Part shown: piece by piece, positions 36,295 through 62,130 of the stretch
Layout: each line of letters begins with the position of its first letter
Numbering within the stretch: position 1 is the stretch's first letter
Notes under the pieces: generated by a model
The model's input: the letters and a program-made list of their open reading frames with translations, nothing else
What the model was told of the DNA's origin: nothing
The model's database searches: none
Made by a program: the position numbers and the translations under genes
Sequence record: NC_070936.1
DNA: 64,000 nucleotides
Strand: one strand, 5' to 3'

Positions 36295-36888
36295 ATGACA
36301 GTACGCATACTAGGAATAGATCCAGGCATTACTAATCTTGGTGCGGCGGCATTGGAAGTAGACTGTTATGAAAGGAAACCGTTCAAACTTATTTATGCTG
36401 ACACATTACAGGGTGAGTATAATGAGTTTGGGGTAAGGCAGGATAACCCACAGCAAGTACGTGCACTTGGACTCACACGAGTCTATGGTCATGTGTTTGA
36501 GTTAATTGAACCTGCCGTAGTTTCTTGTGAGGATAACTTCTTAGGGATATCCCCTTCGAGTTTTAAACGCCTTATCGAAATAGTTTCTTTCATCCACCAG
36601 TACACTGTAACTAATCAGAAAGATGTTGCCTTTAGACAAGTTCTTCCTCGTCTAGCTAAAAAGATCGTTGATGCAGATTTCAGAGGGACAACTAAAGACG
36701 ATGTTACTAAAGGTCTATTGAAATGTCCTTTCTTAGATCTTAATGGTTTCGATCTGAATAAGTTAACTGAGCACGCTAATGACGCCATATTGTTAGGTCT
36801 TTATACTGCAGTTCAGTATTACCGAGATTTAGGCTGGGACGTGCTTGATGGAAAAGACATCGACAAAACAACCAAGTATCCAAAGTAA
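36295..36888 (+). CDS. ruvC: RuvC-like Holliday junction resolvase
   Basis: RILGIDPG..NLG.A (catalytic Asp), VSCED (Glu), H.NDAILLG (Asp pair region). Confidence 0.85.
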   Translation: MTVRILGIDPGITNLGAAALEVDCYERKPFKLIYADTLQGEYNEFGVRQDNPQQVRALGLTRVYGHVFELIEPAVVSCEDNFLGISPSSFKRLIEIVSFIHQYTVTNQKDVAFRQVLPRLAKKIVDADFRGTTKDDVTKGLLKCPFLDLNGFDLNKLTEHANDAILLGLYTAVQYYRDLGWDVLDGKDIDKTTKYPK

Positions 36889-37498
36889 TGTTAATCATTG
36901 GGATAAATTCCCAATTGGTTTAAAAGCGATATCTGGGTTCAGCTCCTGTGTTACAGTTAACGCAGAAAGTGCTATTTTCATTCTATCCATTCACCTATCT
37001 GTTACTGCAGGTGTGGCGACATGGCCTGGAATTATTACAGCACTTATAATGATGGTCGGTCCGATTATCATTGCCTGGAACTTTGTTAACGCTAGAGCGA
37101 TCATAACAACTATTCTTACTCCTTCAGAAGAAGGTGGTAAGCCTGTGGAACAACAAGTTAAGGTACCACAAATACCTTCCATTGTTACTGCCACAGATTT
37201 TGCTATTGAACGTGAGTTAGTGGGACCTACCTCAGTTATCCTGAGAGCTATAGCTGGTGCCATTTCAACACATGTTATTTGTTTCTGCAGTTTGTTGTTT
37301 ACCTGGACGATACACGAGTCCATGATTGCAGGTAAACCACTACCAAGCAATACAGAATTGTTATTGGTTGTTATTGGACCTGTGGTGACGTCTTGGAACT
37401 TTGTTCGTGCAAGTGCCACTATTAATACTGTGATGCAAGGCGCTAATAAAATTGAGAAGTACCGTACTAAGCTGGCTAGTTGGATACAACCAAAATAA
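36845..37498 (+). CDS. Multi-pass membrane protein with internal duplication; holin candidate
   Basis: 217 aa, about four hydrophobic segments, basic C terminus, two copies of AI.G...H.S..AG...GP....WNFV.A.A.I; convergent with the spanins. Confidence 0.5.
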   Translation: MMEKTSTKQPSIQSNVNHWDKFPIGLKAISGFSSCVTVNAESAIFILSIHLSVTAGVATWPGIITALIMMVGPIIIAWNFVNARAIITTILTPSEEGGKPVEQQVKVPQIPSIVTATDFAIERELVGPTSVILRAIAGAISTHVICFCSLLFTWTIHESMIAGKPLPSNTELLLVVIGPVVTSWNFVRASATINTVMQGANKIEKYRTKLASWIQPK

Positions 37499-37550: not shown

Positions 37551-38036
37551 CTATTTGACCAATTTAAGAGAGAGTTTAGTTTTCTCTGTAGACCCATCAT
37601 CGAAGTTGTCAATAATGGCATTGATATTTCCTATTAATCTATCAACAACTTCATTGAGTCCATTGATACGATCATTAGAAGCATCTAACTCCTTAGTGGT
37701 GCCGATCAGCAGGAGTCGAGTATGTAAGTAACACATTTCAAAATCAGGGGAACTAAGGCAATCATTGGTAGCTAGGAATTGATCCAAGTTTCCAATCATA
37801 GGTCCGATAGGTTTCCAATCTTTATTATAGATGTTACTAGGGATGTCAGTTAGTGCCGGCTTTAGAGCTACTAGCTGGCTTTTGTACAGGGTTAGTTTTT
37901 GAAGTTCCGTCTTCGCTTCCACGTACGTCTCCGCTTCCGATATTTTCGGACCGGCGCAACCGGAGATCGTAAAGATCAGAAAGAGTCCCGCTATCCCTTT
38001 TAGGATCATACCCATATTTCTCATAAAGGTTTTCAT
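37551..38036 (-). CDS. Outer-membrane spanin (o-spanin, Rz1-like lipoprotein)
   Basis: Probable start ATG 38036; signal peptide with lipobox FTISG|C; starts inside the i-spanin gene in another frame. Confidence 0.75.
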   Translation of the reverse strand: MKTFMRNMGMILKGIAGLFLIFTISGCAGPKISEAETYVEAKTELQKLTLYKSQLVALKPALTDIPSNIYNKDWKPIGPMIGNLDQFLATNDCLSSPDFEMCYLHTRLLLIGTTKELDASNDRINGLNEVVDRLIGNINAIIDNFDDGSTEKTKLSLKLVK

Positions 38037-38295
38037 AATCGCCTTCGCGTTTAAGATTATTAGCATAAGTAGACTTCTGTAAGTTTTCTGTCCACTCTCG
38101 TTGGGCATTGGCTGTCTTAGTCATATTCTCAGCAGTAACAGAGATACGGTCAACAGCAATAGTTAGTTTATCGATAGTATCTTTACTTACCGTACTATCT
38201 TGCTTAAAGATCAACCACCCACCAATGAATAAAACTAATATCCAAAGTGCAATGGTGTTCAAAGCAGCTAACTTATTTTTCAAAGCGTCATTCAT
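37846..38295 (-). CDS. Inner-membrane spanin (i-spanin, Rz-like)
   Basis: 149 aa; single N-terminal TM (IALWILVLFIGGWLIF), then coiled coil; overlaps the lipoprotein gene by about 190 nt. Confidence 0.75.
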   Translation of the reverse strand: MNDALKNKLAALNTIALWILVLFIGGWLIFKQDSTVSKDTIDKLTIAVDRISVTAENMTKTANAQREWTENLQKSTYANNLKREGDYENLYEKYGYDPKRDSGTLSDLYDLRLRRSENIGSGDVRGSEDGTSKTNPVQKPASSSKAGTN

Positions 38296-54931: not shown

Positions 54932-57412
54932 ATGATTACTAAGCTAATTATTAAGAACAATGCGGCGTTATCTAAAAAGGGTGCAACGTACCTAGAGTTA
55001 GATACTAAAGATGTATTTAACATCATAGTGGGTAGAAACGGTTTTGGTAAAACCACCTTGATGGGTGAACTTACCATGCTTCCACCGGATAACGCAGATT
55101 ATTTACCAGGCGGTTATAAAGAAGTACATGCAGTAGTTGGTAAAGATACTTACATCGTTAAATCGACGACAGGTAAGTCCTCTGAACACTTCTTTATCCA
55201 TAATGGAAAAAACCTTAATGAAGGTAACACATTATTGGTTCAACGTGAATTAGTCAAGATTCACTTTGGTGTAACTCCGTTTATCAAGGACGTCATTACC
55301 GGTTTAGATGTGCGTAATCTATTCACCACATTATCAGCACCTAAGCGTAAAGATTTCTTAATGACAGTTAACCCAAATGACACCTCTTATGCTTTAAAGA
55401 TTCATGACAAGTTGAAGTCGAATCTTAATGCACTTAAAGGTGGGTTAAAAACTCAACGTCAGCGTTTAGCTGTTGAAGAAGGTCGTTTGGTACAACTGGC
55501 TTCTATGGATCCTGCAAAGCTCCAAGAAGAGATCAGGGTGATGGACGATCAGATTAAAAATGCTTTAATCATTCACGGTACTTTACAGAACGTTCAACGT
55601 AATGAGTTAACAGGACTTAAGAATGACATTGCAAATATCATTTCATTTTTAATGTCCTCTCATACTCAAGTTAAGCATTCCAAACCTACCTTACTAAAGT
55701 TAAAGATCCAATCAGAGTCCACGCTTGATTATTACAAAACTCGTGAAATCAAGTTAAGTTCTTTGTTGGGTGAATTAGCAAGTCAGTTATCTGGTTTGGA
55801 TTTGGCTAACAACAACCTGGAGACTTATCGTTCTCGCTTAGAACTGAATAACAGGGCTATTGAGATTAACAGGGAAGAACTTCATGCTTTAACACGCAAG
55901 TATGAAGAACATGAGCTGTTTAAGGGAGTCTATAACGATCCTGATTTCCAGGCTTCTGCTTCTGAGTTAGTTAACTATCTTCACGGTGTTAATAAGACCA
56001 ATGACCAGTCAATCACTTCTACGATTTACCAGTCTAAGCAGGAGAGAGCCAGAGAACTCGATAATGAACTTCAAGGGATTCGTCGTAAACTGTCAGATAT
56101 CCAACATCAGTTAGATCATTTTGAGAAAGCTGATTCAGTTGAGTGTCCTAAGTGTACAACTCGTTTCAAAGTTGGGATGGAGAAAGTTAATCCCCAACAA
56201 ATAAGAAATGAAGGAAACATCTTACAGGAACGTAAAGATGTGGTTGAGAAGGAACTGAAAGTTATTTCTGAATGGTTGGAAGATAACCAAGGTTGGTATG
56301 AGTCAATGGGATCTTTGACTCGTTATGCACGTCGTTTCTATAACCCACAGTTAATCATCAGCATGATTTCTGAGTATCGTATCGGTAAAGCTGATATTAG
56401 CATTCTTATCGATCTTATTCGGAGCACTGTGAATTATGGCGAGATCTCGAAAACACTTTCTGTCCTCGAAGAGGAAAATCAGAATGTCGAGAAGCAGATT
56501 AAATTTCTGGAGAGCAGTGATGTTGAAACATTGTTCAAAAGGGCACAGTTTGTGGAACGTGAGTTGGGCTCAGTCCAACGTTCGGTTCGCCGAGTGCTCA
56601 ATGAAATCAATGACTACGACATGCAACTCGATATCATCGAACTCGATGTCCAGAAAAGAGATCGACTTGGTTACCTGATTCAAGAACTGGAAGATAAGTT
56701 AATCGAGAACGGACAATGGCGTATTAAGGTAAGAGTAGAAGAGATCATCCAGGATTTAACCCCTCGTAAAGATCAGCTCATCTCTAACTTGATTCGTTCA
56801 GAATCGCTTAACTCAGTTATCGAATCTATCAAAGAAAATATCGCAGATATGGAACGCCGTGAAAAGCACACTGCTTTGTTACTCGATGGACTATCACCTG
56901 TTAAGGGATTGATTGGTTATTTGATGAATGACTTTCTTAAGTCAGTTGTTGCTAACGTCAACGCTATCATTCAACCTATCTGGACAAACCGTTTACACGT
57001 ACTCAACTGCTCCACCAGTAAAACAGAAGAAGATGTAGATTTAAATTACAGCTTCCCTGTACTTACTGGTTCATCTGATAAACCTAATAAGGATATTGGT
57101 AACTGTAGTGGCGGTGAACGTGAGATCATTAACTTTGCATTCCGTTTAGTCTTACACCGTTATCTTGGAAAACGAACTTGTCTTCCTTTGATGATGGATG
57201 AAGTGGGTGTTGCATTTGATGAACTTCACCGTGGGCGATTCAATGCATATATAGCCGAACAAATCAGACTGGATAAACTACCCCAGACATTTATGATTTC
57301 CCATAGTCATAAAGAGATCTGTTCAGCTGTTCAAACAGCAAACTTCATAGCCTTGAACACTGAAGGTTTGAGACTTGGTTTTGAAATGAACAAGAAGTCA
57401 GTTATTCGTTAA
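54932..57412 (+). CDS. sbcC: SbcC/Rad50-like SMC ATPase (phiKZ gp165-like)
   Basis: Walker A GRNGFGKT, coiled coils, zinc hook CPKC, signature CSGGE, Walker B LMMDE, ISH motif. Confidence 0.9.
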   Translation: MITKLIIKNNAALSKKGATYLELDTKDVFNIIVGRNGFGKTTLMGELTMLPPDNADYLPGGYKEVHAVVGKDTYIVKSTTGKSSEHFFIHNGKNLNEGNTLLVQRELVKIHFGVTPFIKDVITGLDVRNLFTTLSAPKRKDFLMTVNPNDTSYALKIHDKLKSNLNALKGGLKTQRQRLAVEEGRLVQLASMDPAKLQEEIRVMDDQIKNALIIHGTLQNVQRNELTGLKNDIANIISFLMSSHTQVKHSKPTLLKLKIQSESTLDYYKTREIKLSSLLGELASQLSGLDLANNNLETYRSRLELNNRAIEINREELHALTRKYEEHELFKGVYNDPDFQASASELVNYLHGVNKTNDQSITSTIYQSKQERARELDNELQGIRRKLSDIQHQLDHFEKADSVECPKCTTRFKVGMEKVNPQQIRNEGNILQERKDVVEKELKVISEWLEDNQGWYESMGSLTRYARRFYNPQLIISMISEYRIGKADISILIDLIRSTVNYGEISKTLSVLEEENQNVEKQIKFLESSDVETLFKRAQFVERELGSVQRSVRRVLNEINDYDMQLDIIELDVQKRDRLGYLIQELEDKLIENGQWRIKVRVEEIIQDLTPRKDQLISNLIRSESLNSVIESIKENIADMERREKHTALLLDGLSPVKGLIGYLMNDFLKSVVANVNAIIQPIWTNRLHVLNCSTSKTEEDVDLNYSFPVLTGSSDKPNKDIGNCSGGEREIINFAFRLVLHRYLGKRTCLPLMMDEVGVAFDELHRGRFNAYIAEQIRLDKLPQTFMISHSHKEICSAVQTANFIALNTEGLRLGFEMNKKSVIR

Positions 57413-57430
57413 CCCCGGAAACGGGGTTTT
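57411..57430 (+). terminator. Short terminator hairpin
   Basis: AACCCCG-GAAA-CGGGGTT-TT directly at the sbcC stop. Confidence 0.65.
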
Positions 57431-57450
57431 ATTCATTAAGGAATTTAATC

Positions 57451-58008
57451 ATGAAAAAGCTTTTCCCACTCGCCAATAAAGAAACTCGTTCTCTGTTCGT
57501 TCACCCATCCATTTGTCAGGCATGGGAAATTGGTAGCGAGCATGAAGGTTATGGCCCAGAGCACGAAACCAGTTTCCTGAAACCTGGATTGGTTCCTAAC
57601 CTGGCTAAGCTGTGTAAACCTGATAATGTTTACTTCACGGTAACCGAGGAACCTAATCCAGATACCATGACCATTGATGAACTCCTTATCGGGATCAAAG
57701 ATAAAGAAGGATTCTGGCATAATGTAACACTGTCCAACCTGGAAGTTAAGTTAGAACGTCTTAATGCAGCTCAGTGGGGCATTGATGGCGTTGTTTCTGT
57801 TCCAGTAGATGAAGACCTCACTTGCCGATATGATGGTACCTATATCCATTTGGGCGAAACCAAAGTTATCAACGTTCCTATCAAACTTCGTTATGACCGT
57901 GCTACTCGTGCTCTGTCTTTCTCCAGTCCTATCAGTTATGACGTCGAAGGAATGGAACTTTTAGGTATGGTTCTCGATATTGACTGGCGTGACGCTAAAT
58001 CAGTATAA
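57451..58008 (+). CDS. Hypothetical protein
   Basis: 185 aa, AAGGA RBS. Confidence 0.65.
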   Translation: MKKLFPLANKETRSLFVHPSICQAWEIGSEHEGYGPEHETSFLKPGLVPNLAKLCKPDNVYFTVTEEPNPDTMTIDELLIGIKDKEGFWHNVTLSNLEVKLERLNAAQWGIDGVVSVPVDEDLTCRYDGTYIHLGETKVINVPIKLRYDRATRALSFSSPISYDVEGMELLGMVLDIDWRDAKSV

Positions 58009-58017
58009 TACATGATA

Positions 58018-58062
58018 CCCCTCAGACTTCCTAGGTGAAAGCCTAAGAGGTCTGAGGGTTTG
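58018..58062 (+). terminator. Long terminator-like hairpin
   Basis: CCCTCAGACTTC-CTAGG..CCTAA-GAGGTCTGAGGG-TTT. Confidence 0.65.
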
Positions 58063-58155
58063 GTAATATGATTTATTGTTTGTTTCAATACTTTGCTAAC
58101 ACACAGCGTATACGCCGTCTAACAACGGTTGTATAACTTTATTACTGTCACATAT

Positions 58156-58181
58156 TTTCAGGCAGATATTATCATTATGTA
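58156..58181 (+). promoter_or_regulatory. Putative phage early promoter
   Basis: TTTCAGGCAGATATTATCATTATGTA; shares AGGCAGATATTATC exactly with the 22082 copy. Confidence 0.65.
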
Positions 58182-58225
58182 AAAGTAAAACTTTTATTCT
58201 TTTTAACAACTTATAGGTAATAAAA

Positions 58226-59035
58226 ATGAACAGTAAGACCCAGACCAACCTAATGAGTATCTTTTTATTACTCATGTCACTTGTATGGATCTCCACTGTT
58301 TCGACTGCATATGCATCCGTCGGAGCTAATCCAAACGAGTACACTACCAAAATAGTGATGAAACGTTTTGATGGTTTGAAGGAGCATCTCTATGAAGCTT
58401 CTAAAGTAAGTGGGATGGATATGGCTGACTTAGTCGCTATATCGAGTATCGAATCCACCTTACGTACCAATACCCGTTCAAAGTTTTCAAGTGCATCCGG
58501 TGTAATGCAATACACCCGTTCAACTTGGAAACAAGATCGTAAGTTGTATGCTAAACAACTAGGTCTTTCAGAATCGGCTAATGTTTTAAATCCAAGAGCT
58601 AATCTCTTGATCGGTGCCACATCGCTAAACAACCTTAAGCAATTCCTCATAGAAAAATCACACTTGACCGACAAAACTGTCCGTGTAGGTGATCTTTATA
58701 TGAGCCATTTGGTTGGGGCCAACGGTGCACTAGCTGTTATTAACTCTAACAGCAACAAACCAATCAATAAGATCTTAAGAGTTACTAAAGGTAATTATTC
58801 CATGTACTACAAGCCGAATGGTCAGATTCGTACTGCCCGTGAATTCCGCTCTTATATGGATTACCTTGTAAAACGTGAACGCAGCTTCTATGAAAAAGAA
58901 GTAAGACGTTTCCAGATTGCCAAAGTAACTGCCCCTATTATTCGTCCGATCGAAGAAAACTTGTGGGGTAAGCAGTTAGCCATAGCTATCGCAAACACCA
59001 CTAAGTATGTCGGATATAACGATTTAAATAGTTAA
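58226..59035 (+). CDS. Lytic transglycosylase (SLT family, phiKZ gp144-type catalytic domain) with N-terminal signal peptide
   Basis: LVAISSIES (catalytic Glu), SSASGVMQY..STW, NPRANLLIGA, LYMSHLVG motifs; N-terminal hydrophobic helix ending AYA|S. Confidence 0.85.
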   Translation: MNSKTQTNLMSIFLLLMSLVWISTVSTAYASVGANPNEYTTKIVMKRFDGLKEHLYEASKVSGMDMADLVAISSIESTLRTNTRSKFSSASGVMQYTRSTWKQDRKLYAKQLGLSESANVLNPRANLLIGATSLNNLKQFLIEKSHLTDKTVRVGDLYMSHLVGANGALAVINSNSNKPINKILRVTKGNYSMYYKPNGQIRTAREFRSYMDYLVKRERSFYEKEVRRFQIAKVTAPIIRPIEENLWGKQLAIAIANTTKYVGYNDLNS

Positions 59036-59096
59036 TATCTACGCACGTGATGATGTTGTGATAGGAACAATAATTTTCACAACGAGAACAGTTCAC

Positions 59097-59360
59097 ATGA
59101 ATACTAAACAAATTCACTGTCTTTGTGATCAGCAACTTGTGCTGACACCTTCGATGGTTCAAGGTCCGAATAGCATTATCGTTAATGTCCAATACCAACA
59201 AACTCAAGCTTCTGGTAAAACAGCAGTTGTTAGTTGGGGTGGTGGAGTAAGAGCATTCATTACTTTTGATCCCACTGGCAATCAGGTGCTTAGTTACACT
59301 CTGGCTGTTCAGGACTACGCCACACAACAATCGATTGAAAACATCATCAGTGCACTTTAA
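59097..59360 (+). CDS. Small hypothetical protein
   Basis: Probable start ATG 59097 (MNTKQIHCLC..., 87 aa); followed by a terminator. Confidence 0.5.
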   Translation: MNTKQIHCLCDQQLVLTPSMVQGPNSIIVNVQYQQTQASGKTAVVSWGGGVRAFITFDPTGNQVLSYTLAVQDYATQQSIENIISAL

Positions 59361-59370
59361 TATGAAAACC

Positions 59371-59402
59371 TAACTAGGACTGGTTAACACCAGTCCTAGT
59401 TA
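59371..59402 (+). terminator. Terminator-like hairpin
   Basis: 13-bp stem TAACTAGGACTGG-TTAACA-CCAGTCCTAGTTA. Confidence 0.7.
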
Positions 59403-59426
59403 ACCTATGTTTATTTGGAGAAACCA

Positions 59427-60149
59427 ATGAACTTTGAAAGCAGTATCATCTTCACTGAAGGTCCGTTACAGGTAACTTTAAAAGGTCTGTATCCGACAAA
59501 AGGTAAGAAAAGGGAAAAACTAATTATCGATCATGTAGGACATCCTGTAATAGAGTGGTCGGTAGAAGGAGAAGGGTTGGAACCAATCAGTAGCCGCCAA
59601 ACTGTTATTCGTGCTTTAGGTGTCTGTGCTAATGACATGTTTAATGGATTCCCTGAATGTCATAAGGACTATAAACGTTCTTGGCATATGTTGATTCAGA
59701 AGTTAGGTAAACGTTCTTATGCTTCAACTCTACAGGCCGAACTTGATCGTTATCGTTCAGAAATGAAACCATCTTATCATTCCGAGCCGACATTCAAAGT
59801 GAGGGAAAGAGATGCTGTTATTACTCTGTTTAAACCTGATACGGGCGACGATGAATTTAAACTCAGCTTTAAGGTTAGCAAACCAAGTCACTACAGTGTG
59901 CACGGTAATATCGCGATCCGTTGCAATGGGGTTATTCGCCGTATTACTTACGCTCGTGATTTTGGGGTAGATAACATTCCTTACTTACTCAACCAAATTA
60001 AAGAGTGGTTGGATATCGCCGCTGAATCACATCGTTTAGATAAATCGCGTGTCAACATTATGTTGAACAACATAGAAGGTTATCTGAACAAGAAAGAACC
60101 AGCAATTAATTACTTGCTTAGCAATCTTAATGCTGGCAATAATCTATAG
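59427..60149 (+). CDS. Hypothetical protein
   Basis: Probable start ATG 59427 with GGAG RBS (MNFESSII...). Confidence 0.65.
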   Translation: MNFESSIIFTEGPLQVTLKGLYPTKGKKREKLIIDHVGHPVIEWSVEGEGLEPISSRQTVIRALGVCANDMFNGFPECHKDYKRSWHMLIQKLGKRSYASTLQAELDRYRSEMKPSYHSEPTFKVRERDAVITLFKPDTGDDEFKLSFKVSKPSHYSVHGNIAIRCNGVIRRITYARDFGVDNIPYLLNQIKEWLDIAAESHRLDKSRVNIMLNNIEGYLNKKEPAINYLLSNLNAGNNL

Positions 60150-60156
60150 GTTAAAT

Positions 60157-62130
60157 ATGGATACTGAAAAATTACGTCGTATACTTGATTTGGAAGCTAA
60201 GATCAAATATCACGATTACATGTACTTCAATCAAGACATGCCAGTTATCTCTGATGCTGAGTATGATGATCTGGTTAGAGAATATAAAGAACTTCTTGAA
60301 CAGGTGCCTGATTATAAATCTCAACTGCGTGTTGGGTTTGTTGAAGTCGATTCTAAACTTTCTACTGTGGAAATCACTGAACCAATGATTTCTATTAGTA
60401 AGAAGAAAACCCCTAAGGACTTTAAAGTATGGATAGCAAGAAATGCTCATGCCAATGAAGTCTACGAAGATAAGCTCGATGGTGTTGCAATACGTCTTGT
60501 ATACACTAACGGCGTGCTTACTGCTGGTCATACCCGTGGTCGTGGAGATATAGGTGAAGATGTAACTCACCGCATGGGTCTGGTTGTTAATATCCCAACT
60601 GAAATTGAAGCTTATAAAGGTTTCGAGAAACGTACAGTTACTGGTGAATGTTTCTGTTTGTTCACAGACTTTGACGAGTATTTAAAACGTCACAGTTTAG
60701 ACCCTAAAGAAACCGACACCCGTTCCCTGGTCTCTGGCTTACTTCGCCGTCAAACACCTGGTGACCGTGAAGACCTACCTATTCAGTTCAAGGTATATAA
60801 CACAGACCTGGAAACTCGTAAAGGCTTTAAGACCTACGATGAACTAATGGGGCATCTTTGTTCTATTGGGTTCGATATCCCTAAACGGTTCACTGAACAA
60901 GAAGTTGAAGAAATGTTATCTTTAGCTTCTAAACCTGTTGGGGAATATCCTATCGACGGGATAGTGGTTAAGATTAACGATCTTCGTGAGTGGGAGAAAG
61001 AACAAACTGGCGAGTATTATACTTATGCCACTTGTTATAAGTTCCCCACATTAAGTTATGAAACTAAAGTCACTGGGATTGATTGGTCTTTAAGTAATGA
61101 AGGTCAATTGATCGGTACATTGATGTACGAATCAGTTGAGTATGATGGAACCAAACTTACACGTTGTAAGTTGGATTACGCAGGAAGTTATTTCGAGAAA
61201 GGGTTGCGAATGGGATCTATCATTCGTATCACCAAGGCTAATGAAATCATTCCTAACTTAGTAGGATTGGTTGACCCAGGTGATGGTGAACGTTTGCACT
61301 ATCCTGAGAACTGTCCTTTCTGTAACAAACCTGTTGAATATTATCAGCTATATGGAACAGCTTATTGTAAGAACGATAGTTGTGAAGGTCAGCTGATAAA
61401 ACAACTTACACGTTTAGTTTCTAAACAAGGTCTGAATATCAAAGGTCTTGGAGATGAACGTGTTCAATCGTTAGTAGATAACGGGTTCTTATCTCAACCT
61501 GCAGATCTGTTTAAACTAACAGAATCTGATTTCATTAACTCTGGTATTGGTAAAGGTGATGCGGAAAATATCCTCAATCAAATCAGTCGGGCTTCTGACC
61601 GGGATATTGTCCATTGGTTATTTGGTCTGGCTATCCCTGGACTTGGACTCGTACGTGCTGCGGATATTAGCAATCTGGCTGCGACCAACGGGTTAAATGA
61701 TGGCTTGCAGTTACACGATGCCAAGTCATTCGTAACGGTACTCAGTGACGCCAAATACATGTCCGACATGTTTGGTCTCGATGGGTTACCTATGGTAACC
61801 CATGTTAAGAAACATGCTGATGAAATATTGGACTTCTTAAGTCATTATGATTTTAACAGGCAGAGTGTTGTTAAAGAAGTTGGGATTCCAATTGCTATTA
61901 CTGGTGCTTGGGCTGCCCTACCTCGTAGCATGATGGAAGAAGGTTTGGCTAATGCTGGATATACAGTAACTGATTCTGTTACTAAGAGTTCTAAGTGTTT
62001 GTTGATTGGTGACAAACCAGGAGCTTCCAAACTAGAGAAAGCAAACCGGTACGGTATCCCTAAGTACAACATTACTCAGGTTCATACCATGAATGGCTTA
62101 ATCGCTTTAATTGAAAGTAAACCACAGTAA
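60157..62130 (+). CDS. ligA: NAD+-dependent DNA ligase
   Basis: Subdomain Ia HDYMYF..D.PVISDAEYD, motif I EDKLDG, TRG.G..GEDVT, DGIVVK, zinc finger CPFC...C.NDSC, HhH repeats, C-terminal BRCT; probable start ATG 60157. Confidence 0.92.
   Translation: MDTEKLRRILDLEAKIKYHDYMYFNQDMPVISDAEYDDLVREYKELLEQVPDYKSQLRVGFVEVDSKLSTVEITEPMISISKKKTPKDFKVWIARNAHANEVYEDKLDGVAIRLVYTNGVLTAGHTRGRGDIGEDVTHRMGLVVNIPTEIEAYKGFEKRTVTGECFCLFTDFDEYLKRHSLDPKETDTRSLVSGLLRRQTPGDREDLPIQFKVYNTDLETRKGFKTYDELMGHLCSIGFDIPKRFTEQEVEEMLSLASKPVGEYPIDGIVVKINDLREWEKEQTGEYYTYATCYKFPTLSYETKVTGIDWSLSNEGQLIGTLMYESVEYDGTKLTRCKLDYAGSYFEKGLRMGSIIRITKANEIIPNLVGLVDPGDGERLHYPENCPFCNKPVEYYQLYGTAYCKNDSCEGQLIKQLTRLVSKQGLNIKGLGDERVQSLVDNGFLSQPADLFKLTESDFINSGIGKGDAENILNQISRASDRDIVHWLFGLAIPGLGLVRAADISNLAATNGLNDGLQLHDAKSFVTVLSDAKYMSDMFGLDGLPMVTHVKKHADEILDFLSHYDFNRQSVVKEVGIPIAITGAWAALPRSMMEEGLANAGYTVTDSVTKSSKCLLIGDKPGASKLEKANRYGIPKYNITQVHTMNGLIALIESKPQ

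Follow-up and report, generated by a model that had tools for sequence, protein, structure and literature searches.

The nearest described relative of the enzyme considered here is the phiKZ endolysin gp144 (PDB 3BKH/3BKV), which, like gp188 of phage EL, carries an N-terminal peptidoglycan-binding domain, has no export signal, needs a holin and is encoded in or near late lysis or structural genes. Among nucleus-forming jumbo phages, lysis by phiKZ (holin, regulator, gp144 and spanins) has only recently been worked out. Here we describe a two-gene unit of Klebsiella phage N1M2 (MN642089 / NC_070936, 253,367 bp), a nucleus-forming, phiKZ-related jumbo phage whose gp36 is the nuclear-shell protein (phrog_4795, E 1.9e-127). 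The unit lies in a stretch of 64,000 nucleotides from sequence record NC_070936.1, called the window below, of which positions 57400-60200 are 100% identical to N1M2; the N1M2 record position equals the window position + 62000, and window positions are given unless the record is named. In the existing annotation the first gene of the unit, gp122, encodes a 'putative lytic murein transglycosylase' and the second, gp123, a 'hypothetical protein'. The gp122 protein has a catalytic domain homologous to that of gp144, with the catalytic Glu aligned, and gp144 is its best structural match. Unlike gp144 and EL gp188, however, it has a predicted cleavable signal peptide, an early-type promoter and another position in the genome, and N1M2 encodes a separate EL188-like protein, gp224.

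A Sec-secreted transglycosylase that is additional to the late endolysin LysK has been described in Kayviruses, phages of Staphylococcus, where Tgl is preceded by an early-type promoter and lyses de-energised cells (PMC7150955). gp122 resembles Tgl in its predicted signal peptide, in its early-type promoter and in being extra to the major endolysin, whereas Tgl has a Gram-positive host, a promoter read by the host RNA polymerase and an IsaA/SceD-like domain; the Tgl gene is also close to lysK, with a few genes between them, and a large distance separates gp122 from the lysis genes. The E. coli enzyme MltE/EmtA (endolytic family-1), the second-best structural match to gp122, is a single-domain periplasmic SLT of similar size, but MltE is an outer-membrane lipoprotein, whereas gp122 is phage-encoded, has no lipobox and is predicted to be soluble. 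Muralytic enzymes exported by Sec before lysis also include the signal-arrest-release (SAR) endolysins, such as P1 Lyz and phage 21 R, and signal-peptide endolysins, such as Lys44 of the Oenococcus phage fOg44, which are late and paired with holins or pinholins; SAR domains are uncleaved, weakly hydrophobic membrane anchors. In contrast, an AxA cleavage site is conserved in the gp122 family, whose presequences often measure 17-20 amino acids (aa).

The gp122 gene, its SLT label and the promoter before it have already been published. In full-text literature searches, no account of an exported jumbo-phage transglycosylase, or of its occurrence beside a modular endolysin, came to light. Apparently undescribed so far are the signal peptide and its conservation, the exchange of a domain with respect to gp144, the joint presence of a modular endolysin in several genera and the insulated early unit. 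A large group of phiKZ relatives seems to carry, beside a normal endolysin, a second gp144-type catalytic domain that is rewired for Sec export and for an early-type promoter. The best explanation, in which we place moderate confidence, is that gp122 is an early exported SLT acting as an accessory, pre-positioned wall-loosening enzyme beside the main endolysin, and that gp123 is independent of it. Should both the timing and the export prove true, the system would offer a handle on how an infected Gram-negative cell withstands an active transglycosylase in its periplasm through most of the latent period, and on the benefit of an early exported enzyme to the phage. Orthologues labelled 'endolysin' are probably not the main lysis enzyme, in which case database labels would be corrected, a matter relevant to the mining of jumbo phages for enzybiotics.

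Catalytic domain and presequence of gp122

The gp122 protein of 269 aa (open reading frame (ORF) 58226-59035) matched the Pfam family SLT (PF01464) with 27.9 bits at a cut-off of 21.3 and the transglycosylase family phrog_4067 with an E-value of 1.3e-43. A profile of 26 gp122 homologues recovered the phiKZ endolysin gp144 with E 1.3e-16, the match extending to the end of gp144, and the homologous part of the latter comprises residues 99-259 (chain numbering). When gp144 was searched against N1M2 by tblastn, gp122 was the sole match (E 5e-11). Residue E76 of gp122, located in a SIES motif, is invariant across the 26 homologues and aligns with the catalytic E115 of gp144. The AlphaFold model of gp122 (mean predicted local distance difference test, pLDDT, of 83.5; core >90) has a goose-lysozyme-like helical fold, for which Foldseek returned 3bkh (gp144) as the best match (E 2.7e-7), followed by E. 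coli MltE (~3e-5 to 3e-4); the C-terminal helix is modelled at low confidence, and there is otherwise no extra targeting domain. By homology, fold and catalytic Glu, gp122 is a family-1 SLT-type lytic transglycosylase. An earlier note on this DNA had described the SLT as lacking the N-terminal peptidoglycan-binding domain of gp144, and the comparison agrees: homology is confined to the catalytic domain and, as judged from the aligned sequences, the binding domain is swapped in gp122 for a cleavable Sec signal peptide.

The gp122 ORF opens at the first possible start codon 3' of an in-frame stop. Because no earlier in-frame start is available, the hydrophobic stretch is truly N-terminal; the further upstream start that the earlier note had asked about, and that would have moved this stretch inside the protein, does not exist. 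An alignment of the presequences of the 26 homologues (40-86% identical) revealed a three-part organisation into n-, h- and c-region in 26 of 26, at lengths of 17-30 aa. The n-region has a charge of +1 or +2 in 25 of them, position -3 is A/V/T/S and position -1 is A/G/S in 25 each, and position +1 is S in 23. The presequences themselves diverge, with a hydrophobic core that varies in sequence and in length, and the mature N-terminus SVGANPNxYT is conserved. No lipobox Cys or twin-arginine motif was found in the gp122 family when the aligned homologues were read directly. Half of the presequences (13/26) have a total length of 17-20 aa and contain uncharged runs of 12-17 residues, and are therefore too short to serve as a membrane or SAR anchor; with the conserved AxA-S cleavage site in addition, the assignment of gp122 to the SAR endolysins was rejected. 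The signal peptide with AYA|S cleavage proposed in the earlier note thus finds a three-part presequence and conserved small residues at -3 and -1 in its favour, and the gp122 family is predicted to have a classical cleavable Sec / signal peptidase I signal peptide, on evidence as strong as sequence evidence gets. A similar export-type N-terminus is present in the distant orthologues of Moabite, Deimos-Minion (identical to the RAY group at the SLT locus), Miami and PCH45.

Transcription unit and expected timing

Two terminators, a promoter, the SLT gene and the 87-aa gene had been listed for this locus before, and all five features were recovered where they had been placed (Table 1). None of 200 shuffled sequences (0/200) folded as well as the hairpin that ends the upstream unit, which escaped a simple terminator scan because its T-run is short; the hairpin behind gp123 was flagged by that scan on both strands. 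Positions 58156-58173 match the genome-wide early-promoter core TTTCARRYAKATATTATY with 0 mismatches, 70 nt 5' of the gp122 ATG. The N1M2 genome record was reassembled from annotated stretches. Perfect matches to TTTCARRYAKATATTATY number 5 in its 253 kb, and good matches number ~26, all on the + strand and placed by hand ~30-140 nt (one ~316 nt) 5' of annotated starts. Motifs of this class also stand before gp36, the nuclear-shell gene, and before a gene for a subunit of the non-virion RNA polymerase (nvRNAP). A dual early/late promoter that would use the embedded TTATG was considered and rejected, as RTG at this place belongs to the general early consensus (NTG at that position in 25 of the 26 good matches, ATG or GTG in 22).

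Lewis et al. (2020) reported the motif at 31 N1M2 sites, classed it as early by its likeness to OBP and phiKZ promoters and noted one copy before the 'putative lytic murein transglycosylase' (PMC7058600), so that the early-type promoter before gp122 is already in print. Mapping of transcription start sites in phiKZ and 201phi2-1 has placed an AT-rich motif ~10 nt 5' of the start, read by the virion polymerase and early in infection (PMC8244752, PMC11512511). Motif homology hence suggests that the gp122-gp123 unit is transcribed early in infection. Of the early promoter claimed in the earlier note, the conserved early-type motif with its perfect core stands, and early transcription itself is a prediction from motif homology.

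The N1M2 locus was compared with its orthologues in Sureiya, SXP01, OBP, pEt-SU, Kc263, AH04, CF8, pAEv1810 and Miami (10 loci in all). In all nine relatives the SLT gene comes after an SbcC-like gene and is followed by a small gene, with the DNA-ligase region downstream; a gp121-like gene separates the SbcC-like and SLT genes in five of the nine. Strong hairpins stand 3' of the upstream gene and immediately 3' of the small gene (the latter at -21 to -33 kcal/mol), each at 10 of the 10 loci, and the early-type motif occurs ~60-80 nt 5' of the SLT start codon in all nine relatives, its flanking sequence having diverged. With a promoter class of its own, terminators on both flanks and neighbours of other classes, the gp122-gp123 pair is therefore an insulated unit. 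The locus of Klebsiella phage Miami (L021, ~1440-1490) has in addition an 11-bp GC-rich hairpin with a T-run between its early-type motif TATATTATC and the SLT start codon, a terminator-like element in the 5' UTR (untranslated region) that is possibly an attenuator.

Between the upstream terminator and the early promoter of N1M2 lies a conserved non-coding block with a hairpin, common to N1M2, Sureiya, SXP01, OBP, pEt-SU, Kc263 and AH04. In the alignment of these seven phages 91% of cells pair, 2 pairs show a compensatory change and 12 of 500 shuffles reach the covariation score; the arms TTATAC...GTATAA are palindromic, covariation is seen at the stem's apex, and the loop is variable. The block showed no match to the sigma-70 consensus, and in a genome scan it was found before no other N1M2 gene. 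A genome-wide k-mer screen of N1M2 yielded mainly terminator motifs, and an Rfam scan of 57900-59500 gave sub-threshold chance matches only. Possible identities of the block are an operator, a second promoter and an RNA element. The sole other N1M2 copy of CTTTGCTAACAC followed directly by a TATAC...GTATA hairpin is found at record ~147867-147925 on the minus strand, inside gp161, the gene of a giant immunoglobulin-like (Ig-like) protein.

The position of the block and hairpin immediately upstream of the promoter is one reason to consider that the early-type motif does not set the timing, and that gp122 is an ordinary late auxiliary lysin expressed through read-through, a second promoter located in the block or translational control. 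The timing is deduced here from the motif, and early transcripts of T4 lysozyme (gene e), which are not translated, provide a precedent for such a discrepancy. Against this, folding revealed no structure hiding the gp122 ribosome-binding site in the 5' UTR, the upstream terminator is strong and conserved, and the block has neither a sigma-70 match nor a recurrence before other genes. We consider late expression of this kind rather improbable.

Lysis genes and possible roles of gp122

The gp224 protein (record 219237-220103, 288 aa) combines a PG_binding_1 domain (26.6 bits) with a lysozyme-like C-terminal domain and lacks hydrophobic segments. Over its full length it shares 42% identity with the product of an ORF at 201.5 kb in phage EL; the size and position of that ORF lead us to equate it with the characterised endolysin EL188. 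By these features gp224 is a putative cytoplasmic modular endolysin of the EL gp188 type. The spanin genes adjoin gp111 and a RuvC homologue, and the phiKZ lysis cassette gp141-gp144 likewise comes after a RuvC homologue, gp140; their distance of ~20 kb from gp122 is that given in the earlier note. The gp111 protein (216 aa, annotated as hypothetical), whose gene occupies the place of the phiKZ lysis cassette, flanked by the RuvC homologue and the spanin genes, contains an internal repeat (..GPIIIAWNFVNARA.. / ..GPVVTSWNFVRASA..) as well as several hydrophobic segments and is a candidate holin. The gp113 protein has an N-terminal transmembrane domain (TMD). The annotated N-terminus of gp112 (37551-37799, minus strand), a gene annotated as 'lambda Rz1-like', shows no lipoprotein signal or lipobox, and the start of gp112, or its identity as an o-spanin, may need revision.

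With gp111, gp224 and the spanins, N1M2 therefore seems to have a complete holin-endolysin-spanin set without gp122. The exported SLT and a peptidoglycan-binding lysin candidate likewise occur together in OBP, CF8, AH04, Miami, Moabite and Deimos-Minion. Its signal peptide, the separate lysin gp224 and the distance of ~20 kb from the spanins set gp122 apart from a canonical endolysin, and we predict it to be an additional enzyme, not the main endolysin.

An early exported accessory enzyme would work as follows. The gp122-gp123 unit would be transcribed in the first minutes of infection, and the host Sec system would export the gp122 pre-protein, which signal peptidase I would free into the periplasm. 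There gp122 would cut glycan strands while wall synthesis and membrane energisation keep the sacculus intact. In what is the weakest step, it would condition the wall and so speed or secure lysis after holin triggering, in the way that has been proposed for Kayvirus Tgl, and gp123 would be a co-transcribed early cytoplasmic protein with a function of its own.

Several points weigh against this explanation. Its priming step is drawn by analogy with Kayvirus Tgl, and analogy is not evidence. An active transglycosylase exported early could be harmful, and no mechanism of restraint is visible. RNA runs containing this stretch were searched for and none was found, the best having 5-7% of its words. 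Whole-genome k-mer and pattern scans of Moabite revealed no recurring motif upstream of its SLT gene; since the promoter class of the Moabite, Deimos-Minion and PCH45 orthologues was not assignable, early timing may not be general across these distant orthologues. Finally, gp122 alone in N1M2 is homologous to the catalytic domain of the proven phiKZ endolysin, and curators labelled its orthologues in Moabite, pEt-SU, AH04 and Yubaba 'endolysin'.

The last two facts also favour the alternative that gp122 is the true lysis endolysin, of a signal-peptide type resembling Lys44 of fOg44, exported in advance and set loose once the membrane potential has been collapsed by the holin, with gp224 being mainly virion-associated or redundant. 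In favour of this alternative, an EL188/gp224-type transglycosylase has been recovered from virion preparations of RisingSun and EL. Transposon sequencing (Tn-seq) of PCH45, described in a preprint (bioRxiv 10.64898/2025.12.19.695335), classed a 'putative lytic transglycosylase', gp152, as essential; by genome position, however, gp152 is probably a 252-aa ORF near 149 kb and not the exported SLT, QFP93147.1, at 172.9 kb (172943-173602). The gp122 promoter is moreover of the early type and not of the TATG type, the gene is ~20 kb away from the spanins and the candidate holin, a modular peptidoglycan-binding lysin coexists in every genome checked, and EL and phiKZ lyse without an exported SLT. 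Hence, we hold it unlikely that gp122 is the enzyme responsible for lysis.

The early-type promoter and the predicted periplasmic destination of gp122 would also suit early remodelling of the sacculus that lets the cell widen or bulge around the phage nucleus, a role put forward in the earlier note. Bulging is documented for some chimalliviruses: according to a 2026 review, it is marked for phiKZ, Goslar, Ariel and Eric, with little change of shape for RAY and PCH45 (PMC13282480). The presence of the SLT gene does not track this behaviour, because phiKZ bulges without an exported SLT, whereas RAY and PCH45 carry one and barely change shape. The bulging proposal finds no support in this comparison, and we regard it as highly improbable.

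The exported SLT is kept in many enterobacterial, Aeromonas and Vibrio chimalliviruses, but the examined phages of P. aeruginosa and P. chlororaphis do not have it; PhiPA3, 201phi2-1 and SPN3US gave gp181-type matches only, starting near residue 46-55, and the exported form is absent from EL and phiKZ. This distribution, together with a promoter class shared with host-takeover genes, would fit an early envelope-directed takeover or competition factor that blocks superinfection, disturbs envelope machines or defence sensors, or feeds peptidoglycan recycling. To our knowledge, there is no precedent for a transglycosylase acting in exclusion, and gp122 has no extra targeting domain save the low-confidence C-terminal helix, so that this factor appears very improbable. 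A broader proposition, speculative and still on the unlikely side, is that many nucleus-forming phages of enterobacteria, Aeromonas and Vibrio send a soluble wall-cutter to the periplasm within minutes, as a takeover step distinct from lysis, in which the enzyme could condition the envelope at the entry site, reprogramme wall turnover or exclude competitors. If true, this would make it the first takeover factor described from a phage of Gram-negative hosts to be secreted early and to degrade the wall.

gp123 and neighbouring features

The gp123 protein belongs to phrog_16812 (21 representative homologues), and its model (pLDDT 93) consists of six strands and a C-terminal helix. It had no match in Pfam, and its model gave nothing below E 0.3 in a Foldseek search of the PDB; with VIA-align the best Z was 5.6, within the noise band, and the lysozyme inhibitors Ivy (Z 4.5) and PhiA (Z 4.1) gave weak rows that are not significant. 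In BFVD only uncharacterised jumbo-phage orthologues were found, and sequence links to Ig-like repeat proteins are weak. No signal peptide or hydrophobic N-terminus is present in gp123, which is therefore predicted to reside in a different compartment from mature gp122.

In the OBP, Aeromonas and Miami groups, the SLT gene is followed by a homologue of gp123. EL has its homologue, ORF119 (L022, 2404-2737), directly behind an annotated phage promoter and after the SbcC-like ORF118, but an exported SLT is absent; compared with its OBP, Aeromonas and Miami relatives, EL has, most simply, lost the exported SLT. Downstream of the SLT orthologue in Moabite, PCH45 and Deimos-Minion are unrelated genes. 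That EL keeps a gp123 homologue without the SLT and that the distant phages have other neighbours argues against a dedicated regulator of the SLT. The earlier note had named the 87-aa gene a candidate regulator, a suggestion with which these gene neighbourhoods and the absent signal peptide disagree; by the sequence comparison, a role of gp123 as a dedicated gp122 regulator is not supported. In Serratia phage PCH45 the gene after the SLT (L041, 2204-2701) encodes 165 aa that likewise start with a signal peptide (…AFNASA then QQ), gives a weak match to Expansin_C (E 0.006) and may specify a second periplasmic wall-directed protein; this gene is not present in Moabite.

Table 1. Positions of the features discussed, in window coordinates (dG, folding free energy in kcal/mol; z, z-score)
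Feature	Position	Strand	Remarks
Terminator-type hairpin ending the upstream SbcC-gp121 unit	58019..58058	+	dG -29.3, z -5.85
Conserved non-coding block TCAATACTTTGCTAACAC + hairpin TTATAC..GTATAA	58086..58137	+	conserved in 7 phages
phiKZ-type (virion RNA polymerase) early promoter motif	58156..58190	+	predicted transcription start near 58180
Predicted gp122 signal peptide, aa 1-30	58226..58315	+	n-region MNSKTQTN followed by h-region; AYA closes the c-region before S31
Mature gp122: gp144/MltE-like lytic transglycosylase domain + C-terminal helical extension	58316..59035	+	
gp122 catalytic Glu76 codon	58451-58453	+	
gp123, 87-aa protein, predicted cytoplasmic	59097..59360	+	six strands + C-terminal helix in model
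Terminator ending the two-gene unit	59371..59402	+	14-bp stem, dG -22.8, z -5.4
TATG element just 3' of the terminator, putative late/middle-type promoter for the gp124-ligase unit	59406..59409	+	
gp111, multi-TMD membrane protein, candidate holin, outside the cassette	36848..37498	+	
gp112/gp113, annotated Rz1-like (spanin) genes, outside the cassette	37551..38295	-	annotation

A YTATG sequence directly after the cassette terminator is also present in Sureiya, OBP, SXP01, pEt-SU, AH04 and pAEv1810. TATG elements recur 5' of structural genes in N1M2 and resemble the phiKZ late promoter, and the element listed in Table 1 probably represents a phiKZ-like late or middle promoter class serving gp124 and the ligase gene.

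Predicted early transcripts of N1M2 often open with a short 5' stem-loop (for example at record 90564, 177694 and 183905 and at window 58180-58196). At the SLT locus this stem changes between phages with pairing kept (AAAAG/CTTTT, AAAGG/CCTTT, GTGAGA/TCTCAC), and it may act as a 5' stabiliser of early transcripts.

The gene upstream of the unit, gp121 (185 aa, 57451-58008, + strand), showed a weak, sub-threshold match to the phiKZ major-capsid-protein family PF25620 (19 bits at a cut-off of 27), and its counterpart in Kc263 is annotated as 'putative capsid protein'; gp121 may be the gene of a capsid-derived fragment.

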